A stretch of 64,000 nt of DNA, from NCBI GenBank assembly GCA_976226885.1, contig OZ320321.1, forward strand, positions 59,272,001 through 59,336,000, given 5' to 3'. The stretch is from Iphione sp. A-MEVVRFRX5. Its lineage: Eukaryota. How positions within the stretch are numbered: position 1 is the first letter of the stretch; the number at the start of each line of letters is the position of its first letter. Positions 3-57,100 of this stretch are shown one piece after another. A program made the translations under genes and the position numbers. Below the pieces are notes generated by a model. It did no database searches, was not told the origin of the DNA, and saw only the letters and a list, made by a program, of their open reading frames with translations.

Positions 3-1058
3 AGAGCCCAAGGAACTGTTTGGTGGCCTTTCCTAAGCAAAACCATAGAGGAAATGGTTACCAAGTGTGGTGTCTGTTCCAAACTCCGTCCAGAGAAGAA
101 GGAACCACTGATGCCTTCTTCATTCCCTAGCCGTCCATGGGAGAGGGTTGGAACAGACCTATTTGAATTTGACAAGAGCAACTATGTCATAGTCGTAGAC
201 TATTTTGCCAGATGGATCGAAGTCCGCTACCTGGAGACTACAACATCACAGACAACCATACGGGCACTAAAGAGTATCTTCGCCACCCATGGCATCCCTG
301 ACATTGTGGTGTCTGACAACGGACCACAATATTCATCAGATCTCTTTAAATCCTTTGCATCCAAATACGGATTCACACATGTGACCTCATCTCCCTTGCA
401 CCCACAAGCTAATGGAGAAGCAGAGAGGGCCGTTCAAACTGCGAAAAACATCTTGCTAAAAAACGACGACCAGTACCTTGGCTTCCTCTCATACAGATCT
501 GCTCCATTACAGAATGGCCTGTCTCCAAGTCAACTCCTGATGGGGCGACAACTGCGCACCACCCTACCTACAACGACAAACAACCTGCAGCAGACGGTGG
601 AAAAGATGCACATGGAGAAAGTCAGGGAGAAGGAGGAAAAGTACCGGCAAAAATCAGCCGACAACTTTAACAGGCGACACCGCACCATCCCTCTACAGCC
701 CCTGGAAAAGGGTGACACAGTATGGATAAAGGACCAACAACGCCATGGATCAATCATTGAGTGGTGCACTGAGCCCAGGTCGTACCAAGTGAAAACTGAC
801 CTTGGCACCACTGTCCGGAGGAACCGAGAATCGATGGTTCGCATGAAGGAACACACTCCGATAGTGGAACAGGACGGAGAGGATATGTGCGTAACACCGA
901 GTCCGATCAAAGTATCCCCACTAAGGCCAAACCCACCTTCAGCCATGCCGTCCAGCACAGTCGGACCACCCACATCACCCAGTGGTCCTCAAATGAAAAT
1001 GCCATCAAGGACAAGAGTTGGAAGGACAGTAAAACCACCATCCCGGTTGGATCTGTAG
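3..1058 (+). CDS. Ty3/Gypsy LTR-retrotransposon pol C-terminus (integrase), 5'-truncated by the window edge
   Basis: The frame is open from nt 3 (RAQGTVWWPFL...KCGVC, the C-terminal half of the integrase zinc finger). It has a DDE core (TDLF, VSDNGPQY, NGEAER) and the typical tail RTRVGRTVKPPSRLDL*. Confidence 0.92.
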   Translation, partial: RAQGTVWWPFLSKTIEEMVTKCGVCSKLRPEKKEPLMPSSFPSRPWERVGTDLFEFDKSNYVIVVDYFARWIEVRYLETTTSQTTIRALKSIFATHGIPDIVVSDNGPQYSSDLFKSFASKYGFTHVTSSPLHPQANGEAERAVQTAKNILLKNDDQYLGFLSYRSAPLQNGLSPSQLLMGRQLRTTLPTTTNNLQQTVEKMHMEKVREKEEKYRQKSADNFNRRHRTIPLQPLEKGDTVWIKDQQRHGSIIEWCTEPRSYQVKTDLGTTVRRNRESMVRMKEHTPIVEQDGEDMCVTPSPIKVSPLRPNPPSAMPSSTVGPPTSPSGPQMKMPSRTRVGRTVKPPSRLDL

Positions 1059-3380: not shown

Positions 3381-6300
3381 CCTCGGTACACTGCACATGC
3401 TGTTGCGTTCAAGCATTGGGCTGCCTAATCGGTGAGGCCCCGACGTCATCACTACGTCAACCAGCAACCATAACCGTAATCGGGCACGCTTTTGGCAAAA
3501 TACACATGAAATGCACGAAATACATGCAAAAGCGACTGAAAAACAGTGGGAAATGGTGATTCATTCAAAATCGCCTTAAACACAGCAAAATTCTTATACA
3601 TTTTCACCAAAAACCAGTATAAAGCATGCGGAGAAATGTGTGGAAATATTATTTTAGTTTTTTTTCAGGAAACATAGATAACAAGGCCATTCGTCTCACT
3701 TTTCATACACTGCTCATGAAATGATGTTGAAAACAAGGTTGTGACGCACGAAAATTGGAAATTTCCAAATCTGGAAGCACGCAATAAATGTATATATAGG
3801 CCTATATTGGCGTGTTTCCACGGCAGTTTCGACACCCCTACGGAAACTGTCCTGGTATGAACCATAGTTTAAAAAAACACACCGCAGCACTGCATTTAAC
3901 GTTTCGGAACAAATCGTACGTAATGGACAGTCCTGAGCGCTGTAGGAGACTGGTCTCACTTTATCCATAGATCGAGTCATGTTCCATCTTACATTGGAGC
4001 GAAATGTACAGTCCTGACTCCTAGTGGGAATTCTGAGCAACAAGGGAACTACACTAGTGTCACCTAGTTGTAGATTTTTGAAACTAAAATACTCTACATC
4101 ACTTAAAGGCGCCTAGAGTGTGATGTTTTTTTCAAATCTACTTAGGATTATTAGATTCATTCTGTAAACATTCTATCTGAAACAGATTATTGTAAAATGA
4201 AGTTGAAAAAAATGCTGTTTTGAACCAATGTCAATTTGTACTATGCTGGTTATGTTGCACCGTGGACATTTCACACCTTTGTCCCTCGTTTGATTTGTAT
4301 TTACAATGTTTCATACATGAATACATGTACATGTATATGGATGTTGGTCAGAGACAGACTGGAAGAAGTCTGCATACCCTAAGATTCTCTCTTTTATCTT
4401 CTTGCCAAAAGGCACCCGCTCCCGTTTCCTCCAGCTTTTCTTGTCACCTCACTGATGTTGGCCTCACAAGCACCTCCCTGTAGTCCATCTGGACTCCCTA
4501 CATTCCATCTAAACATGACATTGATCATATCTCCCTTATCAATACAGCCGCACCATCACCTATATCACCAAAGCACCCTGTTCTACTTCTTATACACACC
4601 TTATTTCCACCAGGCATATCTTCCCATTCCCTCCGGAACCATAGGCAGCTTATTGCCCAATTCAACTGAATCAATGCCACTCCAACCATCCCATGCAACC
4701 CAGACCTCTACCATTCATGGTTACAACTCCTTTACTTCCCCTATCAGAATGTTATGCCAATGGCAAACTTCTTACTCTATTTTATTACAGAACACGAGAT
4801 ATGTGTGTCACTTTGGTGTGTACTTTGGGTTAACTGAGCTTTCACAGACGTGTCAGCCATACTGCCACAGCGGTAATTTGATGTCATAGTACACATTCTG
4901 TAGATCAAAAAGTTTCCTTTTCCAAGTTAACTTGCAAAATAGCGACCAAACACGGTTTTGAAACCAGATGGCCATGTATTAATTAACAAGCCTCTCATAA
5001 AGCCAGGAAAACAGGGAATGTAGCATTGAGGTTTTCTTTTACCATCGATCTCTACGGGGTTGGGGGGTTGTTTGGAGGTGACCCCCTTAAAACATTTTTA
5101 AACAGAACACACTGAAGGTAATATACAGATCTTTGTTTTTATTGCTGGCATGAGATGACAAGATGACTGATGTGCATACTGTACAAAAATGGCAATTAAT
5201 AAAATATAAAAAAAAGGAACATCTATTTTCACAAATAAGTAAGTTCATTATAATAGAACTACGTTAGCACTGAAATGTAATTCTCTCATTTTCACTTCAT
5301 TATAAATCACACAGTTTGAAAAACTGATATCTCAAGGTGGGTTCTAGCAAAGCCAAAACGGTAACATGGCGGTCGACTCTGAAAGCTTTCCGCGGTTGAA
5401 TCAAATCCAGGAAGACAACATAATATCACTGATACAGAACTCTGTACTCGTATTTTCCCCACGTAAAATCAAACTCAACTTCTTAAAGCTTCTGTTTCAG
5501 AAAAGCATGGGAAGATGTTATATAAAGTGGGGGCTCGTCCAAGCTATGATGTACATGCTTACATCCGAGTGATCCTAGGACTCGCAATTTGCAATATTAT
5601 ACAGAAGCTACATGACGGTGTAGATCATGATTTAACTATTAAATGGGCAATTTCTTGGGTAAATAAATGTTAACAAATGCATGCTAATAGTTCTTCAACA
5701 ATCATACTTAGAGCATGGACACATCGCCTTAAATGGATCATGTGCTAGAAAAGGAACTGCAAGAAATATTGAACGTTGAAAATACATCAGGCCATAAACA
5801 ATAAAGCTTATTATCTACATTAAACATTCAACTCGACTTTTAAACAACAGACTAATTGTTGGCGAATAAAATACTGTAAACATAAGCTCGACAAAGGTAA
5901 CAGCTGAACGCCGTTATGCACAATGCTCTAGGAAATACCAAACACGTGCTGAACTGACGAGAGACCAGCAACTTGGAGATGACTTTGTCTGGTGCCCGTA
6001 ACAGTGTCCATTAACACTGTCAGCAGCGCTGAGAGACGGCCAACTCTAGAAGTGGACATTTCAGTACACTGACTGCCAGCACAACGTTAGGTCTTAGCAA
6101 AGGGGTTAAAGAAATCTCTCGGCTGATGGCCGTGCTATTGTACAAGGCATTATCCAAAAGCCCTTCGATACGTATGACATTTTAAGGGTAGGTAGTACAC
6201 ACACTTTCAAAGGTAATATATTTACGTCACAGTAAAATTGGATCGCAGCGAGGTTAGCGACCCTTCCCAGACAAACTGCATCCAAGAATGGCACGCGGAA

Positions 6301-6593: not shown

Positions 6594-6983
6594 TAATTAC
6601 TCAGTTTGACTAAACTTACCTGGGTAAGTTGCAGGTAAACTGGAGTTAGTACCGCTGGAGGAACGGAGTGAGGAGCAAGGGAGATGTGACGTCTGCCATC
6701 TGGTGGACATCAGTATTGAAAGTGAACCGAGCAGCTGTCCCCTTCTGGGAGTGTCTCGTGTGAGAGACACGAGTAGAAAAAACAAAAACCCCCTACTTGT
6801 TTGCAAGGGTGAGGAGAGACTAAGCTCCCAACTGTTTTTATGGGTGAGGCAGGGTGGGCCCTTGCTCCTCACTCCGTTCCTCCAGCGGTACTAACTCCAG
6901 TTTACCTGCAACTTACCCAGGTAAGTTTAGTCAAACTGAGTAATTAGTTCCGCTGTTCGTCACTACGTGTCGACCAAGGGAGA
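6594..6983 (-). repeat. DIRS copy 1 right end: rE/ITR and internal complementary region (ICR)
   Basis: 88-bp perfect inverted repeat 6594-6681 / 6859-6946, then 6945-6983 complementary to the element's 5' end. Internal palindrome AACTTACC-TG-GGTAAGTT. Confidence 0.93.
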
Positions 6984-7259
6984 CTTGAAAGATAAAGGAC
7001 ATCAACAAGGGACAGCGTTCAGGTAAAAACTGACTTTAATGCCAAAGAATGATAAAGGCAAAAGACAAATCGAGCAACATGAACAACTTTGTCCTCTCGG
7101 AGGATTAACCCATGGTCCGACAGACGTTATAACTCAACACTAAGGCACAAATGGAACTTTGTTCCATCAGCAAAAAATGAAATTTAAGTTTTAGGGTTAT
7201 GAACTGCATTTCATACATAGAACTGACTAGTAACCCCAACAAAGTGTGCAACGCTTGAA

Positions 7260-8351
7260 CTAATGTCCCTGAGGGGTAATGTCACGCCGGTAGTGTCTGA
7301 GAAAACTAGAGTCCGACCGCCACATGCCTTTTTTCAAGATTTCGTGCAAAGGCATCCCCTGCGCATGAAGCTTGGAAGAGGAGGCCCCTCTCGTACTATG
7401 GGCCGTATAGACTGTCGTGTCCACACCTGCTACATGCATCACCTGCTTTGCCCAACGAGCAATCGTTGTTTGTCCTGCCGGCCGGTGAGGGGGAATGATG
7501 CCCACCAGCAGTTTCCCTGCGCCATCAGCAATGTCAGCGGTTTTTTGTAAGTACTGCTTAAGGCAGCGAACAACACACAAAGCCCTGTCGTCCTGACATG
7601 GTTTTAACTCTACCCTGTCCGTACCTCGTCCCGGGGTCGAGTGTTTAAGTACGGACCCATAGAGAATTGTGACTGAACCATCAGAAGAGAAGTGAATATT
7701 CTTCCGCAAGATCTTATACAACGTCTGTGTTCTGCCGCAAGATGTTAAGAGCAGTAACATGGTCGTTTTCAATGTGAGCTCCTTGAGCGACAAAGCCGTG
7801 TTAGGAGTCCACGTCCGCAGAAAGTCCAGTACCATATCTACGTCCCACGTGTTCGAGTATTTAGCTCGAGGCGGCCTAATGTTGAATATGCCCCGTAGCA
7901 TTCGTGAAGTCACCGGTTGTTGGCCAAAAGGTATGCCCCCCACTCGAGGGAGGATAATTGACAGTGCCGAGCGGGCCGTATTGATGGTATTATACCGGGC
8001 CCCTTGTCCAAAGAGTTTATGCAGGAAGAGGAGGCCTTGTTCTGTGGTGGCCTGTCGTGGGTGCCACCCCCGCTCCACGCAAAACGTATGCCAGCGTTGT
8101 AAGTAGGATCGGTATACTTTCCTTGTTTTGGGTCTCCAAGAGCGCAATACATGACGTGCAATAGCTGGGTGGCGCGTCATTTCCTGCACTGCTTGTAACA
8201 TAAGAACGCTGACACCAGTTTGGAGCTGGCAATGTGAGGCTGGCTGTGAGCGAGGTGGCCGCGTAGGTTGTCGGGCTGGCTGTAGAACTTCAGAATCGGT
8301 CTGCTCGACTCTCTTGTCAGGAGGGGAAACCACCATTGGGCGGGCCACCAT
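7260..8351 (-). CDS. DIRS tyrosine recombinase (YR)
   Basis: 363 aa. Catalytic-type residues: CGR, HSTR (H-x-x-R), GMW and C-terminal RHY. N-terminal SAM-like region (RPKTRKVYRSYLQRWHTFC). Overlaps the 3' end of pol by 175 nt. Confidence 0.93.
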   Translation of the reverse strand: MVARPMVVSPPDKRVEQTDSEVLQPARQPTRPPRSQPASHCQLQTGVSVLMLQAVQEMTRHPAIARHVLRSWRPKTRKVYRSYLQRWHTFCVERGWHPRQATTEQGLLFLHKLFGQGARYNTINTARSALSIILPRVGGIPFGQQPVTSRMLRGIFNIRPPRAKYSNTWDVDMVLDFLRTWTPNTALSLKELTLKTTMLLLLTSCGRTQTLYKILRKNIHFSSDGSVTILYGSVLKHSTPGRGTDRVELKPCQDDRALCVVRCLKQYLQKTADIADGAGKLLVGIIPPHRPAGQTTIARWAKQVMHVAGVDTTVYTAHSTRGASSSKLHAQGMPLHEILKKGMWRSDSSFLRHYRRDITPQGH

Positions 8352-10081
8352 GGAGCTACAACGATGAGTGTTGCCCTGTCCCGCTGAGCTTTCCGGATGA
8401 CGCGACCCACCAAGCTGAAAGGAGGGAAAGCGTATGCACAGTCAAACTGAGCCCAGTGTAACGAGAAAGCGTCAATAAACACGGCAAAAGGGTCCGGTTT
8501 CCAGCTAATGTATTGAGGGGTCTTGTGATTTATTCGTGACGCGAATAAATCGATGTCGGGTTGCCCCCACTGAGTTACGATCCTGTCAAAGATATGTGGA
8601 TTTAGTTCCCATTCTAGTTCCAGATTTAACACTCGAGATTCAGCGTCCGCTGTAACATTTTGTACACCCGGTATGTGTGTAGCTTGGAGGACTAAATTTC
8701 GTTGCTCCGCAAACCGCCAAATTTCAAGGGCCACCAAATTACATTTTCCTGCTCTCGTTCCGCCCATGTTGTTTATGTATGCGACTGTGGTCGTGTTATC
8801 CGACATGATGAGGAGGTGTGTGTCTTGGAGGTGCTCACAGAACGTGCGGAGGCCAAACAAAGCTGCCGTTAATTCTAACACATTAATGTGAAAAGTGTTC
8901 TCTGTTTCAGACCAAAGGCCACCTGTGCTGCATGTTCCGAAGGCCGCCCCCCAGCCCGTGAGGGAGGCATCCGTGTATATGGTGTGAACTGGAGTCGAGG
9001 ACGGATAATGTTTCTGTAGTGTGGGGAGGTGGTGATGCCACCACTGAAGGTCCTCCCGGCATCTGTGTGTCAGTGAGAAAGTACCTTCGAACCCAGACAG
9101 ACCCGCCCTTCGCAAACATTTGATCTTCCTTCTTTCTAGGTGTTTCATGTGTGCCGGCCCGTAAAGGCTTGCTTTCGTGAGGTCATTCAGGGAACCGATG
9201 AGTGATGCTGCTTTTCTGATTGAGCAGGTGTTTTGTTTGAGCAGTGTCTCTATTTTGAACAATGTCTTTGCGACCCTGTCTTCTGTTGGGCGGACTGTTT
9301 GTTCTACCGAGTCTAGTATGTATCCCAAAAAGGTGATTGACTGCTTGGGTGTTAGGCTGGATTTTGTCATGTTCACGACAAACCCGAGGGAGGTTAAAAT
9401 ATGCATGACTGTGCGTGTGTTCGCTTCTGCTGTTTCTCGAGTGTCACTGATAATGAGCAAATCATCCAGATATGCGACCATTTGTATGCCCTGCTCTCTA
9501 CAGGAGGCTAGGACCGGTTTTAGAATCTTGGTAAAGATCTGAGGAGCTGGGCTAAGTCCAAAGGGGAGTACGTTGAACCGGAAAAACTGGCCCTGCCACT
9601 GGAAAACCAAAAAATCTCTGGCTGTTTCGTCCACCTTCACAGAGTGATAAGCATCTTTGAGATCCAAGGAGGTGAGGAAGGCATCTCGGTTTATTGCTAA
9701 CAGGGCAGACTGAAACGTTTCCATTTTGAAGTGTGATTTTTCCAGGAAGGAGTTTAACTTGGATAGGTCAATGATGAGCCGGAAGGTACCGTTCGGTTTC
9801 GGTCGGAGGAAGACGTTCGAAACAAATTTAGCTTCTTCTCTTTTTACCACCGAGATGACCCCCTCTTCTAGTAAGTTAGTAATTGCGTTTGTTGCGGCTT
9901 GGGTTTGTTCTGAATCGAATCTATATGGACGGGGAACCTCTGTCTGTTCCGGGGTTGAAACAAATCGAAGGGAGATCCCTCGTACCATAGCTAAAATATG
10001 TTTGTCAGATGTGAGCTTTTCCCACTCCGAAAGATACAAGGCAATAGTCGGCTTGCAAGAATGTAAACACGAAGTACTCAC
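8177..10081 (-). CDS. DIRS pol: reverse transcriptase, RNase H and adenine-methyltransferase-like domain
   Basis: RT motifs LDLKDAY, LPFGL and YLDD. RNase H motifs TDASLTGWGA, HINVLEL and SDNTT. MT motifs DIDLFAS and YAFPPF. The track start is GTG and there is no ATG near the 5' end. Confidence 0.95.
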   Translation of the reverse strand: MSTSCLHSCKPTIALYLSEWEKLTSDKHILAMVRGISLRFVSTPEQTEVPRPYRFDSEQTQAATNAITNLLEEGVISVVKREEAKFVSNVFLRPKPNGTFRLIIDLSKLNSFLEKSHFKMETFQSALLAINRDAFLTSLDLKDAYHSVKVDETARDFLVFQWQGQFFRFNVLPFGLSPAPQIFTKILKPVLASCREQGIQMVAYLDDLLIISDTRETAEANTRTVMHILTSLGFVVNMTKSSLTPKQSITFLGYILDSVEQTVRPTEDRVAKTLFKIETLLKQNTCSIRKAASLIGSLNDLTKASLYGPAHMKHLERRKIKCLRRAGLSGFEGTFSLTHRCREDLQWWHHHLPTLQKHYPSSTPVHTIYTDASLTGWGAAFGTCSTGGLWSETENTFHINVLELTAALFGLRTFCEHLQDTHLLIMSDNTTTVAYINNMGGTRAGKCNLVALEIWRFAEQRNLVLQATHIPGVQNVTADAESRVLNLELEWELNPHIFDRIVTQWGQPDIDLFASRINHKTPQYISWKPDPFAVFIDAFSLHWAQFDCAYAFPPFSLVGRVIRKAQRDRATLIVVAPWWPAQWWFPLLTRESSRPILKFYSQPDNLRGHLAHSQPHIASSKLVSAFLCYKQCRK

Positions 10082-10083
10082 CC

Positions 10084-11253
10084 TTACTGGCCTTTGGGCT
10101 GAGACTTGGGTGCTAGGCCCAGCCCCTTCCCGTTTCCCGGATTGCTATCCGAGTTGTCAAGTGGGCTTCGGTAGGAGGTACTGTTCTTGTAGTCCTGGCC
10201 ATTGCGGTTTGCTTTGTACCTGCCCTGCTGTTTGGGCCCCTGTTGGCTCGTCCCCGGCTTGTGTCTGGGGTAGGGGCCTCCCCAGTTGTTGGTGTTTCCG
10301 TTCTTAGCCTTGAACTTCCCTCCTGCTTTTCCTTTGTCGAACCTGCGCGAGAACTTCTCGTCCTCCTCCAGATCCTTGCATTTTTGTCTAAAGTCATTGC
10401 CAAACAAGAACTCCGCTGACGCCGACGCCTCGTCCACTAACTTTTTGTACGTGTCGGGCAAACCCATTTTGACCTCCTGGCGCCGGGTTTTCAGGAGCTC
10501 CGCCCTGTTACTTGCCTCCAAGTTTACCGTGTCAGTCACCAACTTGAGTATGTCCCTGACCCACGGGTGTTCTCTTTCTTTCTTGATAAGAGCCTCGCAG
10601 ATACGTGTCAACACTGTAAAAATGGTATTTGAGTTGTGCATGTGCCGTTGTAAGAGTTTGTCCCTGTTGCGTCCCACGGGATGCATGTGGAGCCAGAGGG
10701 CCGAATTCAACTTTGGTACCTGAAGTTGTTGGAGGTTACTTGGTCTGGCATATTTCTCTCTGAGAGCCTTGATAGCTTCAGCGTCGAGGGGTTTGTCAAC
10801 TCGGCCTCCGAAGAACTTTGCCACTCTGCTGTGGGTAGGTGCCGACACTGACTTGTCTTGGTTGATGTTTCGGGCCAATTCCTCAAAAAATTCGCCGTCT
10901 TCTACGTCCCCCGGTTCTGAGAGTGAGGGCATTTCCGAATCTTCGGGCAATGACCCGAGCAGCCCTTCGTTAGAGAAGGAAGAGATGGTGGACGCTTGGT
11001 CCCTCAGCATCCTGTCGATTGATGGCGCGAAACTGCTACTGCGTCTGCTGCCTGCCACCGCGGACGAGGTGCGTTCCACAGCCGACAGCCGTGCCCCCAG
11101 GTCATGGATAGCTCCTAAAACTTGCGAGAGTGTATCCTCATTAGTTTTTTGGCGGCGTGGTGCGGATCTTTCATCCTGAAAGTTCGCCCGAATAGCTTCG
11201 TTAACATCAGAGTCACTAGAGGAAGCCTGTCCCGCCTCGTGTTCGTCCGGCAT
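10084..11253 (-). CDS. DIRS gag-like ORF1
   Basis: ATG in GCCACCATG context at 11253 gives ~389 aa, matching the 391-aa ORF of copy 2. Shared motif [33 protein letters not shown]. Confidence 0.85.
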   Translation of the reverse strand: MPDEHEAGQASSSDSDVNEAIRANFQDERSAPRRQKTNEDTLSQVLGAIHDLGARLSAVERTSSAVAGSRRSSSFAPSIDRMLRDQASTISSFSNEGLLGSLPEDSEMPSLSEPGDVEDGEFFEELARNINQDKSVSAPTHSRVAKFFGGRVDKPLDAEAIKALREKYARPSNLQQLQVPKLNSALWLHMHPVGRNRDKLLQRHMHNSNTIFTVLTRICEALIKKEREHPWVRDILKLVTDTVNLEASNRAELLKTRRQEVKMGLPDTYKKLVDEASASAEFLFGNDFRQKCKDLEEDEKFSRRFDKGKAGGKFKAKNGNTNNWGGPYPRHKPGTSQQGPKQQGRYKANRNGQDYKNSTSYRSPLDNSDSNPGNGKGLGLAPKSQPKGQ

Positions 11254-12751
11254 GGTGGCTAAGATGGCGACCGTTCCCTTGCGGGTCCGCGCGGAAAAAA
11301 CGTCCGATAGCACAGAAAACGGACTATGACCTCCCCGTAAAAGGTGGTCCAGGGAAACGTAAGCCCCAAGCACTAAAAGATGAAACAATCTTGGGTGTCA
11401 CCAGGCAACAGAAAAACCCGATGGTGATTGATAATCTTCAACGAAAAAACGGTTCCTGTATCCACCTGGCGAGTTCGTACTTTCACTGATGTCCACCAGA
11501 TGGCAGACGTCACATCTCCCTTGGTCGACACGTAGTGACGAACAGCGGAACTAACTAAGTATGCTCTCCCTCACTACCATGACGCTCATGCTTCACACAG
11601 CACAGATGAAAGTTAACTGCACATGCATATCCTCCGGCAAATACAATTCTGAAAGCACTGAAACGTAGTTTTTGAAGTCCCTGACCAGAATGGGTTTTTT
11701 TTCACTAGTATATTTCAATATCTCTCTTAGCAGCAAACTCCTCTCGGCATCTGGTCAGGTCATCTGCCTGGCTTAGTTTTAGGTGTACGGCTACGATAAC
11801 GAGGTGAATCGGTGGGTGGGTTAATAATACGACAAGAAACCTCCTTCCATACTTGAGCACCATATTGATCAATCATAGCGTGAACTCGAATCTGCCTCGA
11901 ACAGAGCCGTCTTGGCCGCCCGTCGTAGAGGACCTCTACACTTGACTCTCATTGAGAACCAAGCAGTTCTGTTCGGTGGTTTGTTTCAAGTATTATCGCT
12001 TCAACATACGAAAATCACATCGGGGAAGGGGGAGGGACGGGGAGTTATGCCAAGAGGTCACACGATAAACACATTCACAAAAGAAAAACTAAACCAGAGA
12101 AAAGATTGGTTTCAACATCAAATCTATGAACACGATTTTTTTTTGTTCTAAAAAAGTTGCCTCATAAAAACTGTGAGGAACACGTTTCTTGTACCATGCC
12201 TTCTAGGCAAGAACTTAAAACCATCTTCCCCAGAAACTCAAATATAGTTAGCCTACTTTTGCAACTTCATGACTATGCCTTGAACCACAAAAGGTGCGAA
12301 AAATTCCCCTTTCATAGATCATCTGACGGGGCACACCCTGTTCAAAGTCTGACATCCTTTCATGTTCAGGTGGACATGTCACCCAGTCATCCTGACCCAA
12401 TGTGGTTTTAGCTTAAACGGGTCGACAGTGGCGCGCCTAGAAGTACGATTCAGCACTACTACCACAACAGCTACATATCCTGCGTCTCCTCGACCTCCGT
12501 CTCCTTGACCTTGTCCTCGTTCCGAATTTCACATAGGGCTGTTTTGTTGCTTTGTGGCAAATACGTTTTGTTGTTCAGTTTAGATCCGACCAGCAAGACA
12601 CGCGTGGGGACTACCTCGACCACACCCGCTTGTCGAAGTACCTTGATCGCAGAGGAGGTGATGACGGTGGGAAGGTGGGAGGGCGTTGGGGGGGCGGGGG
12701 TTGTACGCAGCGATCGTCTCGGTGGGCGGGTCGTCGGGCGGCAAGGCTCGC

Positions 12752-31599: not shown

Positions 31600-33400
31600 T
31601 GGGGGGACCTGAACAAGGGTCATGACTGCCTTGATTGTTGGTGTGTTCGCGTAAAGGTCAAAGCTCCGGCTGAGAGTTGCCTTTTTGACTGCTCAAGTCA
31701 GCCTGAACGTTACTTGATGAAGCAGGTGGTAGTGATGTTGAATTTTTGTGTTTGAGCAAGCTTGTTTTTCACGTTGCCTTGTATATAGTGGCTTGGGTGG
31801 TCAGTCCCTGCGCAGGGCATAAAGCTTGGAAGTTGTCACACGCCTACTGCTGTGGGCAGTATACACAAATATATCTACACGAGCTGTGTACACTACTTTT
31901 CTTGGCCATCTGGCAGTCACGGTTTTACCAACTGGGTCATGGGTTAGGATGATCCCCATGAAAAGCTATTCTGATGTTCATCAAATATCCTTGGTCCTTT
32001 TGACATAATATAAGGCATCTGAACAGGCAAATGGCTAGTCACACATAAAAAGAATTGCTTGCTCCATTGATGGCTTACGGGGTCAGATACCTTTACTGAT
32101 GTGCCATGCAGCATTTCTGGTAGGATTTGTAAAGGTGTCATGTCTTCGGGCTCCATGAATTCGAAACATGTTGGGCAATCTGTTAGGACGATGTAAGGTC
32201 GGCTCCCTTTTTCAACAACAACAAACTACTATCAGCAGATTGTCTTCCAAGACTGGATATATCGCTTCCTGTAGGCACAAAAGGTTTTGCTCATTTTTTG
32301 CAGTAGAAGAGAGGTGGTCAATCAGCCGCTGGCAGCAGTAGCAGGTACCATCATTCACCGGTTGGTTTTTGTGACTGACCGTTGAGGCTGACCAACCACA
32401 GCACATCCAGTAAAAAGCACGGGAATTTGAAATACAGACAAACAAAGCTATCTAGCATTGAAGTTAATGGGAAGGTTAAATAAAACTATTTGCTTTTGAC
32501 AGCATAAAGGAGGATGTATCTGTTTGGGGATGCATCTGGGTGGGAGGAGCAGTCAGCTGAAAAGGGATCAGTAGACTGGCTAGATAAGTCTAGAGCAACA
32601 ATGATAAGTGCTGTGTCATCGATGGTCTGTCATGCTAATTTCCCCATCAACCCGATAGGCAGACAGGCTTAGGCTAAACCAAGAGCCCCCAGTAGAGAAA
32701 AAAAAACTTTGTCTGATCCCAGGTTTCTATGATGTAAATGAAAATCTGAGGTGAACGTTCCTATTCACTTTCCAGAGAGAAGGGTTGCAATTCCCCATCT
32801 GCCTCTTCGATGAAGTCTATTGGGATGTGTGTTTAATAACACAAACAAGACCACAGACTTGAAGGTCTCCATCTTTCATTGTATTTTCAGTATAATCTTG
32901 TTGAGACTCAAGATGCTAATGACAGTGTACCTTGCCTTTCAGCCGTAGAAAGGTGTTTGACATAAATTTCACTTGAGATGGAGGCGAGAAACAACCGCTT
33001 TGTCGAAATTGTTTTTTTATGCCTTTCTCTGCCACGATCTTCTCTACTTCACTGAGTATTAATTATCATGGCCAGGAGGCCTACAACAGTTGCAAGATGG
33101 AATAGCGAGAGCCCAAGACAGCAATAGTAATTAGGGGCTTATCCATGATAAGTTGTCAATGCGCTGCAAACTGACAAGGTCATGAAAGGGCAGTTCCCTT
33201 ACCTCATTCAGGGATTGCACTTTGGCTGGTTGTGAGACAGATGCCCCCACTCTTGGCTGCTGCTTTGGCTCATTTCCGGTTTGTCGATTGAGTCCTTGTA
33301 AAGCAGTGGCTGGTAATAGCTGACTTGTACTCCCAGTGCACCTCTTGTGTGTTGCTTGAACTCTGAGTGCCTCTCACTGTCTCACCGGGTTTTGCCAGTC
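31600..33400 (-). pseudogene. Heavily decayed LINE (APE-RT) remnant, boundaries approximate
   Basis: Frameshifted traces of an endonuclease motif (GNCPF...CS-ID, ~33140-33200) and RT motifs (QRLIDH...FCAYRK..QSWK, resembling LQTLIDK...FCAFVDFRKAFDSVWR, ~32230-32330). Confidence 0.4.
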
Positions 33401-34320: not shown

Positions 34321-37300
34321 CTACTTGATGTCACACAGGGCAGCAACACCGCGCAGTGTCCAATGATCTGGACTCTGCACAGTCTTCAACAGAATAAAGG
34401 TGATGTAGTTGAGGTCGGTTCGCTGTGGCTTCTTGTAGACTGGACAGCGATACTGGCGGGGGTCCTGGGGTCCTGCCTGTATAGCGTACATGTGGATGAC
34501 GGGTAACGGAGTGAACAGCACCTTAGGCTGGGATTCGACGAGACGTAGTTGACGTCGGTCCCAGCTCGCCCCATCCAGGTAGAGTCCGTGTATGTAGACG
34601 CCTTCAGGGGGTCCTGCCACAATATCTTCCTTGAAGTATTTTGTTGCATCATTGTAGAGGATTACTGAGTCGAGTGCCCATCCTTTGTGTGCCCTTGTCA
34701 CCTCCTGCCTCATAGCTGTCAGGAATCCTGCAGTAGAAACAGTGTCACTGAAGATCCTTTCCCAAAGGAAACGGTATTTTTTCAGAATTAAACTTGAACA
34801 TGGTAGTCCCCATCTGACTTCACTATGATCAATAAGTACATGTATAAAGAAACGTACAGAAACGTAAAACAACGTATAAACAAGTATAAAAAAAAAATCT
34901 TTGATTTCAAATGATCTATAAGAGAAATGCAAATACGCTGCATGATGAATTCTAGACAGGATAACGGGAAGTACCCACCCTGGGGATTAAAGAATCCTGT
35001 CATCCAAAAGACAGCAGGCCGGCCCTCAAAGACCCAGCGGGAGAACTGCTCGCTGCGTTCAAGCAGCTCCGTAAACCAGAAGCCCAGAGTCGACGACTGC
35101 CATGAAATGCGGCGCCAGAGCCCAGGAACTCGAGCATCGTACATGTTGTCCAGGGCATCTCTTAGGTTCTCGGACATGATAATGGTTCCCTCAATGGCCA
35201 GTTTGAGGTCGGTGAGTGTCGTGCGTACACTGGTTATGACTCGCTGCATGCGATCAATCTCCTGCTTCAGGAAGATGTTCAGTGGCTGCAGGTGTCCCAT
35301 CTTACGCAAGCGATCACGGACCTGCATCAGAGAACATTTACAGATACTGTGAGAATGACAAGGGTACATTATTGAAAGATAATCATGGAGAAAGGGAAAG
35401 CACTGTAATATATAAATATATAGTGTACAGAAAACCAACAAGTTTAGGTTTCTTTGCTCAGCATGCATACCAGGCAGTCCCGACAAAAGGTAATAACTTC
35501 AATTTACTTTATTTTTGACATTTGACACATTCAGACGTATCCAGTACTACTGTCATGTTTGAGGAACGGAAACTGACCTCATGAGGAATGTAGTCTGGTG
35601 GTAGTTTAGAAAGCATATCATCAGCCATGCGGTAGACAATGGTTTCTCTCGTTTCGCCTCCGCCACCGCCGCTGTCCTTTGGCTGAATGTTCATGATACT
35701 CTCCAACACCTCTGCCGCCATGTTGCTCTGATAGGTGATGTCAGCATTTGGGTGCAGTCCAAACGCTTCAGGAGAATCTACAAGGGGCATCTCCTCAATG
35801 AAGGCCATGTATTCCTCGATCTTTTTACACTTAGGAATCTTGTAGCCCTTGTAAAACTGGAATGCATCACTAAACATTTGGTCGCTGAACCATACCTGGA
35901 AATAAAGAGCAAAAGTTTGGTATTCAATTTGGAATTGAATACATACTTATACAGTTGGATGTCATTTTGCTTCGTGGGTATGTAGTTTACTCAATTTACC
36001 AACACTTTGTCAAACAGATTTTTGTCATCGTCTATAACCGTCTTACCTTGGCAAAGGTGTTCAGGAGATGTTTGTCATAGTCATCAGTGACACGACCTCC
36101 GTACTGCACTTCTCCAAGCATGTAGCGGACCGTGCTCCACGACACGCCTTTCTTCGGGTCGATGTCATCGAGGTGGTTCTGTACGAACTGCACGCTAGCT
36201 GTCCAATCTGAGGAGTTAAACTCGTAGGGAATATTCCAGCCAAGAGGTCCAAACTTGCGACGTTCCTAATATGATGTCAAACACAAATGCCGGTCAGAAT
36301 ACATGCAATGCGAATTTATCAAAGCATATTCAAGCTGATGCTATTCATAGAATTCATTTTGAAACTAAGGTGAACTTTATTATTGTCAAATAACACACTA
36401 CCTATCTTCCTCTAATAAATACACTTAAAAAATGAAATCCGTTTGTGTATCCAAATACATGTGCACGCAGATTTTGCAAAGGCCTTTCTTCGAATAAAAA
36501 AGAATACATCTTGATGGCGCATAAAAATACATAAAAAGAACTCCTGCGGGACTTCAGTCTTTTGAATAAATGTAAATGCAGTTCCAACCTGCACAACGGT
36601 GTGCATGAACGAGACTCCATACAGAATGGGTCTCCACTGTGGCAGGTTGGTAATGTCGAGGAACTCCTGGCTGATATCTGTGTATGTCCGCTTGAGGCCC
36701 GCCTTGATACCCTGTGGCGGTTCATTGGTGAACTTGATGGAACTCTGCAGCAGTGAGATGGGGAATTTGGGGTGGACCTCGGTAGTAATCCAGACACGGA
36801 ACGCCTCGTGAATGGTGGGTGTCTCCAGCAGTGTTGTGAGTAACTCATCCATGAAGTCCAGGCCAAGATGGCAGTTTTGGAGCAGGGCCCAGCCACCCTA
36901 AGCACAGAGGGCAAATAATAAGATAACAATTAGAAGATGGCAGTTTTGGAGCACGGCCCAGCTACCCTAAGCACAGAGGGCAGATAATAAGATAACAATT
37001 ACAAGACATGGCAATTTTGGAGCAGGGCCCAGCTACCCTAAGCACACAGAACAAATAATAAGATAACAGTTAACAAAAAACAACAGGTATATGGGACCTA
37101 ATAGCTGTTGTGTTCCAACTGAGTAACGACAATGATGTACGCTTATTTACTCACAGTTTGCATGAACTGGCCGATCAGACGACGAGCATGCACCTCCTGA
37201 CCTTGGCCCATGGAGATGGCTCGACACTCGAGGTGCACCTTCTTGGCGAGGCCCTCGATCTGATTGGTCGGGTCAGAACCCATGGAGAGGAAGCAGATGA

Positions 37301-51100: not shown

Positions 51101-54100
51101 CACGATCATCAAGTTCAAGCAAAGCACCTATGCTCCACATGAGGCTGCACAAAAATAAGAAAAAGTGCCCTCCTTTCAAACTTCATCGTTTTTGTATACG
51201 TTTAAGTTTAGAAAATTCACCCAGCTAAGATCTTGTTGTCATTCACACCTGGTCAAAAGATAGGTTATAGAACATCTGCCAAAAACTTCCCACCTCTACA
51301 GCATGACTGATATTATCACGTGATTACTGGTTATATAGCCAGGACTTGATACATGAGTGATCTCATTGCATGAAATGATACGGAAACCAAATGAATTTGA
51401 GATAATTTCTCACCTAAATATAAACAGCCTCGCTAAGTGGGCATCCTCTAGGTGTCCCTTCTCTTCCTTGTCCGGGATGAGGCCTTGAAGAAGATCACAG
51501 GCCTGGAAAAGTAAAAAGACAGAGCACATGTATGCAGAGAAATGAGTACCTTCTCAGATATGTCTGAGGAAGAAATGCAAAAGATAAATCTTTCCTTGTT
51601 AATTTCTATCGCTGAATAAACTGCATCTTTCTCTAGAGAATCTATATACAGCTTCATTATAAATGCTCTACATATACATAGATGCTTTTGATCGGGGGGA
51701 TGAGAATCTTCTCTATATTATTTTACCCATGCCTTGCCAAGATATGGTTTGTTAAGTACATAATTTGGCGTACTGTTTACATGTAGGAGTTTGTGTGCAA
51801 TTTATAATGATTAGCCAGTTTGACTAGACTTACCTGGGTAAGTAGAAGGTAAACTGGAGTTAGTCCCGCTGGAGGAACGGAGTGGGGAGCAAGGGAGATA
51901 CGTCACGTGCTACCTGGTGGAGGACAGTCTTGAAAGGTCTAGCCAACGCTGTTCTGGGGTTGCTGACTAAGAGGAGGAACTGAGGGGCCCTTGCTCCCCA
52001 CTCCGTTCCTCCAGCGGGACTAACTCCGGTTTACCTTCTACTTACCCAGGTAAGTCTAGTCAAACTGGCTAATTAGTACCGCTGGTCATCACTACGTGGT
52101 GACCAAGGGAGACTTGAAAGCAAGCAAGACACAGACACAGCGTCTAAGTGAACTTCTTTAATGCTGATGAGTCATGCGGATGTAACAGCAAATATAAAGT
52201 AACCGAAAAGGAGTAAACCATCTACTGAGGACGAGGCTTAATGTCTCGTCTGTAATGTTTCAAGAAACTAGAATCAGATCGCCACATTCCTTTCTTTAGA
52301 ATGTCCTGCAAGGGCATGCCTTGAGCATGCAGTTTCGACGAGGATGCCACTCTGGTACTGTGGGCCATGTAGACCACAGTGTCCACCCCGGCTCTTGCCA
52401 TGACTTCCTTCGCCCACCTGCTGATGGAAGTCTGACCTACCGGCTGGTGTGGCGGGATTAGGCTGATGAATAGTCTACTTGTCGGGGGCGTCAAGTCTTT
52501 AGTGCGGTGAAGATATGCCTCGAGGCAATGAACTACACACAACGCTGGATCGGCTGTGCATGGAGCCAACTGAATGTGATCTGTGCCCCTGCCTGGGGCC
52601 GAATGCTTTAACACTGAACCGTAAAGAATGGTGACTGTACCGTCAGAAGAAAAATGGATATTTGTTCGAACAATTTTATACATCGTCTGTGTTCTGCCAC
52701 AGGAGGCTAGCAAAAGGAGCATATTGGTCTTTAGTGTCTCCTTCAAACTTAAACTACTGTGGGGTGTCCAGCAGCGTAAGAGATCTAACACTAGGTCTAC
52801 GTCCCAAGTGTCCGTGTACTTTGCTCGAGGAGATATTGAACATGCCCCTTAGCACGCGGGATGTGATGTATTGTTGACCGAAGGATACTCCCCCCGGCCG
52901 GGGGAGGACAACAGAAAGTGCTGAGCGCGCCGTGTTGACGGTGTTATACCGGGCGCCCTGTTCGAATAGCATGGTGAGAAATAACAGTCCTTGTTGTACG
53001 GATGCCTTCGTAGGGTGGAATCCTTTTTCTAAACAGAAAAGGTTCCAGCGGTGCAAATAAGAGTGGTATAGTTTGCGAGTTTTGGGTCGCCAGGACCTGA
53101 TGATGTGTTTGCTGATGTTGGTGTTGGCCGTCATGTGGGCGACTGTTTGAAGCATAAGCGGCCTGCAAGTAGTTTCGTACCCGCGATATGCGGCTGGGAT
53201 TCTGCTAGGGGCCCGTGAAGGTTGTCCGGCTGACTGTGGAACTTGAGAGTGGGTTGACTGGTCGTTTGTAAGAAGAGCAGGAACCACCACTGCGCTGGCC
53301 ACCATGGAGAGATTAGAACGATGTTCGCGTTGTCTCTCTGCGCTTTCCGGATCACCCTGCCCATGAGGCTGAAAGGTGGAAATGCGTATGCATAGTCAAA
53401 CTGTCCCCAGTGTAAGGCAAAAGCATCAATAAACAGTGCTTCGGGGTCTTGTCTCCAGCTGATAAATCGGTCTACTTTACAGTTTACACGAGATGCGAAT
53501 AAATCTATGTCTGGCGTTCCCCATTGTTCCACTACCTGCTGGTAGATCCGGGGGCTTAACTCCCATTCGATCTCTTAAGTTAAATTTGCGTGACTCAGTG
53601 TCTGCAACGATGTTTTGGGCCCCGGGGATGTGTGTGGCTTGTAAGGTGAGGTTTCTCTCCTCGGCAAACTCCCATATGGCTAAGGCAACTAAGTTGCATT
53701 TTCCGGCTCTGGTGCCCCCCATATTGTTTATGTATGTGACCGTGGTGGAGTTGTCCGACAGGATGAGGATGTGTTCATTCCGGGCGTTAGTACAGTAAGT
53801 CCTCAAGCCGAAGAGGGTTGCCATCAGTTCCAATATATTGATGTGCAGCCTTCTTTCACTAAGGGACCACAAGCCTCCCGTGCTGTTTCCGGCGAATGCC
53901 GCTCCCCAACCGGTCTGTGAAGCGTCCGTTGTTAACTGTAGTGTGGGGGATAAGGGGGCAAAGTGTTTCTTTGTGTCCGGTAAGGCCCTGAGCCACCATA
54001 GCAGATCATTTTTGCACCTATGTGTCAGGGAGAAAGGTCCCTCGAACCTCGCACTGCCCGCCCGCTTCAAGCTCTTTATTTTTCGTCTCTCCATGTGTTT

Positions 54101-57100
54101 CAAGTGGAGCATGTGTTCCGTGTTAACAAGGTGTTAATTTTGCAGCAAGTGCGAGAGATCTTTTCTTGTGTAGGGGTGACTGTCATGTCTGTGGAGGAAA
54201 TGATATACCTCAGAAAGGTAATTCTTTGACTAGGTTCGAGTTGTGACTTTTGTAAGTTTACCACAAAGCCTAACGTCTGTAGCAATTGGATCACCCGTTG
54301 TGTTTGGCTCCGTGCCAGGTCCCTGGTAAGGCTAATTATGAGTAAGTCATCCAGATACGCTATCAAATTTATCCCTTCTTCCCTACACAGCCCTAACATT
54401 GGTTTCAGTACCTTGGTGAATATTTTTGGGGCTGGGCTGAGACCAAAGGGCAACACATTGAACATGTACATTTCGCCTTGCCACTGGAAGGCAAGATATT
54501 CCCTGTGTTGTGGGTTGATGCTGATCAAGTTGTATGCATCCTTTAGGTCTAAAGAGGTAAGGTATCCCTGATTGTCTATTGCCAAGAGGGTCGACTGAAA
54601 AGTTTCCATTTTAAAATGTTCCTTTTCAAGATATTCGTTTAGGTGTGCTAAATCGATAATGAGTCTGTACGTGCCATTTGGCTTCGGCCTCAGGAAAATG
54701 TTTGAGACAAACTTGGCCCTGTTCTGGTTTATTCGCGTGACCACCCCGCTTTGAACCATTGATTGTATGGCTGCCCCCGCCGCCTGGGTTTGTTCTGCGT
54801 TAAACTGGTACTGTCTTGGAGGGGAGTTCTGCGTCGGAGTTTTGATAAATGTTAACGAGACTCTGTGCACTATTTGCAAAACCTCTTGATTAGATGTAAT
54901 GGCTTGCCAGGCATCTATGTAATTAGCAATCGTAATTTTGTGAGTAGGAAAGGTTTCACTCACCCTTACTGGCCTTTGGGCTGGGGTTTCTGCTGCGACC
55001 CCAGCCCCTTTGCGTTTCCTGGATGGTTGCTGTCCGAGTTCTCGAGGGGGCTCTGGTACGTGGTTCCCCTGTAGTCCGCTCTCTGTCTGTTGCCTTTGTA
55101 GCGGTGTTGGTTCTGCGCGCCTTGCTGGTTTGTCCCAGGCTTGTTTTTGGTGTAGGGCTCATTGCAGTTTGCGAGGTTGCCGTTCTTGGCTTTGAACTTT
55201 CCGCCCGACTTCCCCTTATCGAACTTCTTAGAAAACTTCTCGTCGTCCTCCAGGTCTTTACACTTTTGTCTAAAGTCATTTCCAAATAGGAATTCCGCTG
55301 AATGTGATGCTTCATCGATGAGTTTTTTGTAAGGGTCGGGGAGACCCATTTTGACTTCCTGGGGGCATATTTTCAGCAAGTCATCGCGGTTGCTGGCCTG
55401 CAGGTTTACCGTGTCGGTGACCAATTTTAGGATGTCGCGCACCCACGGCTGGTCCCTTTCTTTCTTGATGAGGTTCTCTGAGATGCGGGCGAGCACTGTG
55501 AAGATTGTGTTCGCGCTATACATCTGTTTCTGGAGGGCCTTGTCCCTGTTTCGTCCCACAGGGTGCATGTGCAGCCAGAGCGCGGAGTTTAATTTCGGCA
55601 CCTGAAGTTGAGCAATGTTTTCTGGTCGAGCGTATTTTTCTCTGAGTGCTTTTATCGCCTTGGTATCCAGTGGTTTATCGACCCTGCCTCCAAAGAATGT
55701 TGCTACGCGTGCGTGTGTAGCTGTGGAGATGCTTTTGTCTCTGTCAAGACCTTGGGCTAGTTCTTCGAAGTAAATCCCTTCCTGGTCGTCTGCTGGCTCG
55801 GACAAGGCGGGCATGTTTGAATCGTTCGGCAGAGAGCCTAAGAGGCCTTCGTTCGAAAACGAAGATATACACGATTCTTGGTCTGCAAGCATTCTTTCGA
55901 TGGAGGGCGCGAAACTGCTGCGGCGGTTGCTGTATGCATCCGGTCCTGAGCGTTCAACTGCTGTGATCCTGGCTCCTAAGGAGTGGATGGCTGAGAGCAC
56001 CTGTGTCAAGGTGTCATGTTTCTCCCGACGAGGATGGGGTTCTCGGGATCCTGAAGGTTTCTGAGGAGGGTGTCCCGTGTCAGAAAGTTCAGAAGAAGAG
56101 TCATTGCCCTGTCTCCCTGGGACCTCGTGGTCATCGGCCATGTTCAGTACAAAATGGCTGTCACCAGACCTCGAGTAAGAAAGTGGAGAAATGTCCTTCC
56201 TCAGGTTCTGTAATCAACCGGGAGGATCTCCGACAGGAAAACCAAAGTCCCACGCACTACAAGATGTCAACAAAGATTCTGGATGGGTAGAATAACTTCA
56301 GATAAAAGTCAATAAAAAATCCTGACGGGGCGATGCGTCCTTCCACCTGGCGAATCGGCCTTTCACTGTCCTCCACCAGGTGGCACATGACGTATCTCCC
56401 TTGGTCACCACGTAGTGAGGACCAGCGGTACTAACCCATAGAGAATTCAATGACTCTGAACAAAACGTTGGAAATAAAAGCTGTCCTTAAACTTACTTCG
56501 GTCGTTGTGTTACTGTGTCCACTCTCCGATTTACAATTTATAATGAAAATCAGTGTACTTTTACTGCCTACTGAACACGCACTGACTAATTTTACCTATC
56601 CTTTGACTCACCTGTTTAATTTGCATGCACTGGAGGACTTCCATCTTGGCGCTCAGGGTTTGGGTGACAAAGTTGAAGAGGTCATCAAATATGCCATCGA
56701 AGCAGTTGAGTAGAACAGCACTCTCTTGTGGTGTCCGATGGTTCAGCCAACCCTTCAAATGAAACCCCAAAAATTTACCAAATCCGTTCACAGCGAAGAA
56801 TGCTACAGTCTCAGGAATTCCACGTGTGCGAAATGAGCTTGCATATACAATTCCAAACAAGTTATAAAGCCTCTTGCCATAAGGATGGGTCTCCAGTCGA
56901 GCGCCGAGGAACTCATATAAACCATGCCGTTCCTGGAGACAGTAGCGGGCGAGGCGTTGTCGATATTGTGAACCTCGAAGAGAACCTTGCAACATGGAGC
57001 CATTGTGATACGGTCACCATTGGCCAGGGTGAGCGTTTTGTTGTCATCCAGAACAGAGTTGAGGTTCTCAATCCAGATAGCATCTACTGGCCCGTCCAAG

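Follow-up and report, generated by a model that had tools for sequence, protein, structure and literature searches.

Alternative splicing and a shared −1 frameshift may together supply Gag-Pol and Gag-recombinase in DIRS1-like retrotransposons

The window analyzed here is a stretch of 64,000 nucleotides from Iphione sp. A-MEVVRFRX5 (GenBank assembly GCA_976226885.1, contig OZ320321.1, positions 59,272,001 to 59,336,000 of the forward strand). Its minus strand carries two tyrosine-recombinase retrotransposons, which we call copy 1 (approximately 11557-6594) and copy 2 (approximately 56400-51800). Copy 1 is intact. Copy 2 is a diverged relative, with a protein identity to copy 1 of 57-72%, and it is damaged: its pol gene and its tyrosine-recombinase (YR) gene are each broken into several open-reading-frame (ORF) pieces. 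Judged by their sequences, both belong to the DIRS1-like retrotransposons of the order DIRS, in that they combine a reverse transcriptase (RT) with RNase H (RH) of the DIRS/Ty3 type, a Dam-like methyltransferase (MT), an overlapping YR ORF in last position in place of a DDE integrase, inverted terminal repeats (ITRs) and an internal complementary region (ICR). The means by which DIRS elements express their recombinase has so far been left open or ascribed to frameshifting. In this report, we propose that a spliceosomal intron spanning pol, acting together with a single −1 frameshift site at the end of gag, probably allows one transcript to specify Gag, Gag-Pol and a Gag-YR fusion.

The coordinates of the features are collected in Table 1. 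The gag products of the two copies are 67% identical and show weak similarity to gag ORFs at other DIRS loci; a Pfam search with copy 1 Gag returned no match. The pol product of copy 1 matches RVT_1 (E = 5.6e-28) and, weakly, RT_RNaseH. Its Dam match is also weak and under the cut-off (E = 0.0037); the FPPF motif of this methyltransferase and the residues flanking it are invariant in 30 aligned relatives. The YR frame, which lies a further −1 from pol and is open from 8441 to 7260, gives matches to Phage_int_SAM_4 and Phage_integrase that fall slightly under the curated cut-offs. Homologs are plentiful: 838 were found for pol, with the same layout, and 12387 for YR, of which 964 stand at E = 1e-30 or better. 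The arrangement of ITRs and ICR is the one known for DIRS1-like elements (PMC3266345), and several blocks of the 3′ repeats of copy 1 are kept in copy 2.

The intron that we propose for copy 1 would begin just past the gag stop and end inside the methyltransferase coding region. The gag TAA is followed by GG and then by GTGAGT, and this donor falls on a codon boundary of the pol frame (...CCA GTA AGG / GTG AGT; here and below, a slash marks a predicted splice boundary). A second, weaker donor-like site in the same phase, CCA/GTAAGG, would start the intron at 10087. At the other end, no AG intervenes between the branch-like GTTTGAC and CTTTCCCTCCTTTCAG. The TTGAC within the former puts a branch-like A 28 nt upstream of the acceptor, but the motif is short and degenerate and we give it little weight. 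The acceptor AG is made up of the first two bases of the Ser codon that follows FPPF. The YR frame is closed by a TGA (8444-8442) 9 codons upstream of the acceptor, and from the first base of the predicted exon 2 it is open for 63 nt, or 21 codons (LGGSRHPESSAGQGNTHRCSS), into the ATG at 8351. In copy 2, the gag TAA occupies 54968-54966, exon 2 would start at 53368, and an ATG likewise lies in frame 21 codons past the acceptor. This geometry, from the TAA-GG-GTGAGT and the pol-phase boundary to the upstream TGA and the open 63 nt, had been described in a first-pass annotation of the stretch, and we find it exact to the base in both copies.

These sites stand out within the elements. The 26-nt block that contains the donor is the longest exact nucleotide match in a whole-element alignment of the two copies, the surroundings of which are approximately 50-70% identical. 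When an approximate 5′ splice-site matrix was applied to the 4964 nt of copy 1, two GT sites alone reached at least 6 bits, that at 10081 and one in the 3′ repeats; upstream of the acceptor, 10081 is the sole GT of at least 3.5 bits. Of strong acceptor-like sites there are likewise two: 8415, and a second located among the 3′ repeats. In both respects copy 2 is alike. Thus, the donor and acceptor picked out by the first-pass annotation are the only strong sites in the coding part of each copy, and this fact, taken with the 26-nt identity, argues that their occurrence in the window is not due to chance. Two other possibilities were considered and rejected. A short intron that would remove the gag stop and fuse gag to pol, assessed by eye, does not fit the phases, and its candidate acceptor is not kept in copy 2. 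An 18-nt pair (10088-10105 / 8904-8921) that is 89% complementary would join the block upstream of the donor to the RNase H region inside the intron; by eye it is not kept in copy 2, and the pairing is probably fortuitous.

With these sites, a single DIRS1-like transcript, alternatively spliced, would operate in both elements as follows. The unspliced RNA would give Gag and, by a −1 slip in the gag/pol overlap (at G_GGA_AAC, 10138-10132, with a hairpin after it, in copy 1), Gag-RT/RH/MT. Splicing would retain the whole gag ORF and the frameshift site and would exchange pol for the recombinase frame. The same −1 slip, occurring on the spliced RNA, would then yield Gag-YR. The products predicted for copy 1 are Gag of 389 aa, Gag-Pol of about 1025 aa and Gag-YR of about 775 aa.

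Table 1. Positions of the features of copy 1 and copy 2 in the window, with homologous features of related families
Feature	Positions	Strand	Remarks
Copy 1 left (5′) terminus / inverted terminal repeat	11485..11557	-	94% complementary to 6668-6714 and 6941-6988
Copy 1 gag ORF, 389 aa	10084..11253	-	ATG 11253 in context GCCACCATG; stop TAA 10086-10084
Candidate −1 slippery heptamer G_GGA_AAC, copy 1	10132..10138	-	gag phase; 2 codons past the −1-frame stop TAG 10147-10145
Hairpin GGGCTGGG...CTCAGCCC, copy 1	10096..10125	-	lies 6 nt past the heptamer; may stimulate frameshifting
26-nt block CAGCCCAAAGGCCAGTAAGGGTGAGT, identical in both copies	10076..10101	-	includes the gag stop, the two donor-like sites and the hairpin's 3′ arm
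Copy 1 pol ORF (RT/RH/MT)	8177..10144	-	frame −1 relative to gag; open from 10144
Predicted 5′ splice site AGG/GTGAGT, copy 1	10076..10084	-	intron start 10081; GTGAGT 10081-10076
Predicted 3′ splice site, copy 1	8415..8447	-	branch-like GTTTGAC 8447-8441; polypyrimidine tract and AG CTTTCCCTCCTTTCAG 8430-8415
Proposed intron, copy 1, 1667 nt	8415..10081	-	spans RT, RNase H and the methyltransferase domain to FPPF
Copy 1 exon 2 (predicted) / YR frame, 384 codons	7260..8414	-	21-codon leader, ATG 8351, tyrosine recombinase; stop TAG 7262-7260
Copy 1 3′ repeats (ICR / right ITR region)	6594..6988	-	88-nt perfect inverted repeat 6594-6681 / 6859-6946; complementary to the left terminus
Copy 2 gag ORF	54966..56141	-	from the ORF and comparison with copy 1
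Proposed homologous intron, copy 2, 1595 nt	53369..54963	-	donor AGG/GTGAGT 54963-54958; acceptor CATTTCCACCTTTCAG ending 53369; pol inside in at least 3 ORF pieces
Copy 2 exon 2 (predicted) / YR	52222..53368	-	two ORF pieces
Homologous introns annotated in RefSeq			L006 (Lineus longissimus), 1760 nt; L010 (Haliotis rubra), 1691 nt
Families without AG after FPPF, YR frame opening downstream			L019, L033, L035, L043, L046, L050, L051, L057, L059, L063, L066, L067, L069, L070, L072, L078, L083

Relatives of the two elements carry the same signals. Pol homologs were taken from public assemblies and from 80 metagenome loci; with the window copies they form 73 families, non-redundant at 85% nucleotide identity, whose Pol proteins are 35-50% identical to that of copy 1. 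In nearly all of them gag occupies the +1 frame with respect to pol. Upstream of the donor position the pol frame has 20-95 open codons, and the gag stop lies either 5-53 nt upstream of that position or within the donor's own GTGA or GTAA. Donors were counted in 68-73 non-redundant families, in all three phases of the interval from the gag end to the RT start. The best GT site has a mean score of 3.66 bits in pol phase 0, compared to −0.74 and −0.98 in the other two phases; scores of at least 4.5 bits are reached by 38 families in phase 0, versus 7 and 3. An intron-side GTRAG was counted 38 times in phase 0 (11 and 3 in the other phases), and the base preceding it is G in 26 of these 38. The full MAG/GTRAGT pattern emerges in pol phase 0 only, with GTGAGT, GTAAGT and GTAAGC as the commonest hexamers at the site, and the conservation of GTGAGT that the first-pass annotation had named as a test of its idea is seen as a donor consensus in the pol phase across dozens of diverged families. 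The protein sequence that follows the donor's Val-Ser is otherwise conserved neither in sequence nor in length. The homologous introns predicted in these relatives measure 1595-1778 nt. In some families (L002, at nt 1565, and also L003, L029, L041 and L055), the first gag-frame stop falls within the donor hexamer itself, as G-TGA-GT or G-TAA-GT. If gag forms an ORF of its own in that frame, which is the case in L002, splicing would take away its stop, and unshifted ribosomes would then pass from gag to the end of the methyltransferase frame.

The position of the acceptor is reflected in the recombinase frame. Of the 43 families with an AG after FPPF, 36 have a YR frame that opens 0-23 codons before that AG and runs for approximately 392-402 codons; among the 30 families without it, such an opening is present in only 2 (Fisher p = 1.7e-11). 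The phase relationship read from the window also holds in these relatives of the two elements. In 15 families the Phe codon is TTT, so that the acceptor TAG itself closes the YR frame, and frame and exon start together. When changes were counted on a pol tree from which the trait's own columns had been left out, the AG state was found to have altered no fewer than 11 times; in 5-6 of 8 independent pairs the opening of the YR frame followed the AG, and in none did it go in the opposite direction. In most of the families without the AG, the opening of the YR frame is displaced downstream by 26 or 146-185 nt, to a pyrimidine tract and YAG or to a point a few codons ahead of them (Table 1). Several of them keep a strong donor at the gag end, such as AAG/GTGAGT in L050 and GAG/GTAAGT in L057. 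These sequences suggest that the acceptor shifted its position on more than one occasion. Because the YR frame opens at a YAG in these families also, the rule that places its opening at a 3′ splice site holds even where the acceptor lies elsewhere.

Gene models in two other species use the same landmarks. In RefSeq entry XP_064631964.1, from Lineus longissimus, one exon of a full DIRS1-like element stops at its gag end as GTG/GTGAGTTG; the intron reads GTGAGTTG...CCACCTTTCAG/, and the next exon begins after GCTTTCCCACCTTTCAG/ at FPPFS. RefSeq entry XP_046546323.1, from Haliotis rubra, is a 714-aa Gag-YR model whose second intron, CAG/GTGAGCCA...TGTCCTTTTAG/, lies between the same two points. 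The first intron of this model, CTG/GTAAAAAC...TATGATAG/, occupies 376 nt inside gag (L010, QXJH01001160.1, nt 3778-4153) and connects the gag frame with the −1 frame; possibly it is no real intron but a device of the predictor for bridging a frameshift.

Further, two Logan contigs, L004 and L005 (runs ERR6349568 and ERR6349567; 99.9% identical), have the structure expected of the spliced form. In both, the C-terminus of Gag (...KKPRFNKDA) is followed by the methyltransferase tail and the YR frame, and no RT or RNase H lies between the gag end and exon 2. With L044, the nearest relative, they align collinearly as far as the gag end and, past the missing pol, from exon 2's first base onward. 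The endpoints of the deletion are the two predicted splice sites, whether the runs are of RNA or of DNA. A search for a genomic copy of the contigs with P0183 returned only relatives of at most 60% identity, and the exact junction base thus rests on homology to L044. A word-indexed search for Gag-YR proteins with the gag part of a single-ORF element (P0036, residues 1-465) returned the query alone. Other candidates for the spliced form were discarded. P0232, whose N-terminus resembled that of a spliced form, proved to be unspliced and of the downstream-acceptor type; many long database proteins that end in YR turned out to be either RT-YR fusions or translations of the YR frame running on through pol, and not Gag-YR fusions. 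For one locus, L091, the upstream sequence was too short for classification.

If splicing occurs, the recombinase might still be translated as a free protein from the ATG at 8351, by reinitiation or leaky scanning after gag, with no fusion to Gag. The in-frame ATG shared by copies 1 and 2 would suit such a route, as would the retention of the gag stop in exon 1. We nevertheless consider it unlikely. The ATG, on which the first-pass annotation laid stress, is not a conserved feature: it arises from the choice of CCA-TGG for a Pro-Trp of the methyltransferase, and most families have CTG, TTG or GTG there, encoding Leu or Val. In 36 families the first Met of exon 2 has a median position of codon 69; 20 of the 36 have none within the first 60 codons, and in about 10 the first Met comes only beyond the start of the conserved recombinase core (SWRPKT...), which begins 91-93 codons past the acceptor in relatives. 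The frame is nonetheless open from the acceptor onward, and scanning ribosomes would face the many upstream AUGs in gag. The segment of the pol frame between its opening and the donor also contains no Met in copy 1, copy 2 and most relatives checked. That the YR frame is kept open across the junction while being poor in AUGs implies that translation must enter it from gag. Once the predicted intron is removed from the three families whose gag and pol form one ORF (L003, L018 and L029), Gag and YR are joined in uninterrupted ORFs of 871, 850 and 755 codons that require no frameshift. Separate initiation on the spliced RNA is thus possible for the present element, which has the ATG, but it cannot be the general mechanism.

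In copy 1, where gag and pol are in different frames, we infer that entry from gag proceeds by −1 frameshifting at the heptamer listed in Table 1. Canonical X_XXY_YYZ heptamers in the gag/pol overlap of the relatives number 65 in the phase appropriate for a −1 slip from gag; the counts for the two remaining phases are 13 and 8. Among the in-phase heptamers TTTTTTA, AAAAAAC and TTTAAAC dominate, and GGGAAAC also occurs; all are upstream of the donor, and they sit in the same gag/pol overlap in most relatives. Both the heptamer and the gag stop belong to exon 1 and are consequently common to spliced and unspliced RNAs. A hairpin can form 6 nt past the heptamer position in each copy; that of copy 2, GGGGCTGGGG...CCCCAGCCC, exceeds shuffled sequence in stability (z = -3.2). 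A different use of frameshifting would dispense with splicing: a second −1 slip, in the pol/YR overlap of the unspliced RNA, would make Gag-Pol-YR. The YR frame is −1 relative to pol, with an overlap of some 80 codons in copy 1, and such a route was called probable for Ngaro-like elements by Poulter and Butler in 2015, according to the statement quoted in PMC13003380. For the elements studied here it appears quite improbable. No phase is preferred among the heptamers of the pol/YR overlap (10, 12 and 8); in-phase ones are confined to 9 of 36 families, and copy 1 lacks them; further, a second slip leaves unexplained the conserved donor, the AGY bias described below and the opening of YR exactly at the AG.

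Very improbable, in our estimation, is the notion that no splicing occurs and that both signals are by-products of coding, GTGAGT for a Val-Ser at the N-terminus of Pol and AG for the Ser or Arg after FPPF, with Phe-Pro-Pro-Phe codons making up the pyrimidine tract. It is true that FPPF is a conserved Dam-like catalytic motif whose codons are necessarily rich in pyrimidines, and selection on Val-Ser at the protein level is conceivable. Synonymous codon choice, however, is not accounted for in this way. The residue following FPPF is Ser or Arg in 102 of 120 Pol homologs. In the 47 families with Ser, the codon is AGY in 39 (83%) and TCN in 8, as opposed to 22% AGY among the Ser codons at other positions of those pol ORFs (binomial p = 2e-18), which bears out the suggestion of the first-pass annotation that AGC rather than TCN should be favored there; Arg, in L001-L003, is encoded by AGA or AGG and not by CGN. 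Coding for Val-Ser also would not enrich G at the last exon base upstream of phase-0 GTRAG, and selection for a protein segment is hard to reconcile with the lack of conservation immediately after Val-Ser. In addition, the YR frame has its opening at the AG, the two vary together, and the gene models and the pol-less contigs use exactly these sites. An env-like subgenomic mRNA, made by joining a 5′-leader donor ahead of gag to the 8415 acceptor so that YR becomes the first ORF, has a strong acceptor and a retroviral layout to recommend it but is scarcely credible, given that neither copy has a GT of at least 3.5 bits upstream of its gag-end donor (10081 in copy 1, 54963 in copy 2), that exon 2 usually has no AUG, and that the conserved donor sits at the gag end.

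We place the probability that alternative splicing and a shared −1 frameshift together give rise to Gag-Pol and Gag-YR at about 0.7, and our confidence in the pol-spanning intron by itself is higher. This is in essence the interpretation offered by the first-pass annotation, and it is supported by comparative, annotation and assembly evidence: the conserved sites and phases, the RefSeq introns, the pol-less contigs, the in-phase heptamers and the families with fused ORFs. Several points weigh on the other side. About 40% of the families lack an AG at the site after FPPF, and a minority (L041, L052, L060-62, L079, L087) have no good donor and a YR frame open through all of pol; the scheme is thus not universal. 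The families are related to one another, and the Fisher and binomial p values overstate their independence; a paired phylogenetic test, with its few pairs, gives p of approximately 0.03-0.4. The 5′ splice-site matrix is approximate, although the comparison from phase to phase does not depend on its exact values. Both RefSeq introns belong to predicted models, and L004 and L005 could be DNA copies of pol-less elements, in which case past splicing would still be indicated. In copy 2, which has decayed, the homologous heptamer is the non-canonical A_GGA_AAC, and the hairpin of copy 1 is no more stable than shuffled sequence (z = -0.45). Finally, splicing of the very element in the window is a prediction from its sequence and from its relatives. 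On the same footing, Gag-YR would be the functional form of the recombinase, and the splice ratio would set the balance of RT to YR; packaging of the recombinase through Gag is our conjecture.

The families with a long overlap merit separate comment. In L060, L061/L062, L041, L052, L079 and L087/L089, the YR frame is open for 576-965 codons upstream of the FPPF site. In L060 and L061 a single ORF (1357 and 1335 codons, respectively) starts at the position of ORF1 and comprises ORF1, an overprinted stretch of pol, and YR. The N-terminal parts of the long-overlap ORFs have no detectable similarity to 44 gag ORFs, and the label gag is applied to them by position only. The long overlap may represent an alternative way of linking ORF1 to YR.

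A broader picture can be drawn from these observations, to which we would give even odds. An old and widespread intron spanning pol would be a feature of animal DIRS1-like elements, and splicing together with one −1 site would set the ratio of Gag, Gag-Pol and Gag-recombinase, the last entering particles as a Gag fusion. Families in which the acceptor has moved would keep the rule on where YR opens, donor-less families would compensate by an overprinted frame through pol, and reverse-transcribed spliced RNAs would seed pol-less, non-autonomous copies. If the conserved intron is real, it would explain the long, AUG-less extension of YR that overlaps the methyltransferase domain, the existence of “long overlap” and “short overlap” families, and the balancing of three products from one promoter. 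A single recoding site would serve two alternative fusion proteins, with the choice made by splicing, and pol-less derivative copies would be expected. The annotation of these abundant animal repeats would change as well; gene predictors already produce odd “uncharacterized protein” models on this intron.

The rest of the window provides some context. ORFs with matches to dynein heavy chain domains (Dynein_C, AAA_9, AAA_6/AAA_5) flank copy 2 on the minus strand at 34321-35486, 40335-40808 and 57325-57891. By this evidence copy 2 appears to be situated in an intron of a dynein heavy chain gene, in the sense orientation and carrying its strong donor and acceptor. Sense-oriented DIRS insertions in host introns, of which copy 2 would be one, bring such a pair of sites along. 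The 3′ repeats of both elements contain a conserved near-palindrome, ACTTACCCAGGTAAGT / ACTTACCTGGGTAAGT, at 6614-6629 and 6911-6926 in copy 1 and at 51828-51843 and 52040-52055 in copy 2. On one strand at each site it includes CAG/GTAAGT, a perfect complement to U1 that, with 8.7 bits, is the top donor-like score in each element. An old, degraded fragment of a third DIRS-type recombinase is found at 31816-32287 on the minus strand, with 36-47% identity to YR residues 28-83 and 267-330; it was rejected as a gag-YR junction, as no neighboring similarity to gag or pol was found. The window also holds an ORF with an rve-type integrase core (E = 6e-14; 54-1058, plus strand) and a piggyBac-like DDE_Tnp_1_7 transposase with a zinc finger (E = 5.6e-28; 62346-63206, minus strand).

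An important question is how this scheme relates to systems already described. The first-pass annotation professed no awareness of such a scheme for DIRS elements, and in the open full-text DIRS literature we likewise found no internal intron, spliced YR expression or Gag-YR fusion; two central reviews fall outside that coverage, and an earlier description is therefore possible. Among the closest systems are Dictyostelium DIRS-1 and the DIRS1-like elements whose “long ORF overlap” was noted by Piednoel et al. (PMC3266345). They fall in the same retrotransposon order and share the gene set of gag, RT/RH/MT and YR, the ITRs and ICR, and the overlap of YR with pol (PMC3266345; PMC7192593), and the open papers on them make no mention of splicing or of a route for YR expression. 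They differ in that their YR frame is open through most or all of pol; the members sampled here (L060-62, L041, L079, L087) are without a good donor at the gag end. The YR ORF of the Ngaro-like elements is also −1 to RT/RH and overlaps it by a short stretch, but the route proposed for them, in the passage quoted in PMC13003380, is a frameshift within the RT/YR overlap, where the DIRS1-like families studied here show no slippery signal.

The separate parts of the proposed mechanism, alternative splicing and −1 frameshifting, are known; what we have not found described is their arrangement, with a putative donor after the gag stop, an acceptor inside a coding domain, and one slip site for two fusions. 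In the Ty1/copia long-terminal-repeat elements copia of Drosophila and BARE of barley, a spliced subgenomic RNA encodes Gag only. As in those elements, an internal intron would here remove pol from part of the transcripts of one promoter and thereby tune the ratio of structural to enzymatic products, while the unspliced RNA would also serve as the reverse-transcription template. The DIRS1-like scheme would depart from theirs in that splicing puts a second enzyme gene, that of the recombinase, into the frame fed by the frameshift at the end of gag, and in that the acceptor lies inside a coding domain where two frames overlap. Retroviruses, for their part, make a spliced env mRNA or, in foamy viruses, a spliced pol mRNA, alongside gag-pol −1 frameshifting. 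The ingredients would be alike, in that a GT-AG intron, an X_XXY_YYZ heptamer and, possibly, a downstream structure would draw several proteins from one transcript. Retroviral donors, however, are located in the 5′ leader, and the spliced products start at their own AUG. In the DIRS1-like elements, the predicted donor follows the gag stop, the downstream frame is usually devoid of an AUG, and one slip site would serve two alternative C-terminal extensions of Gag.

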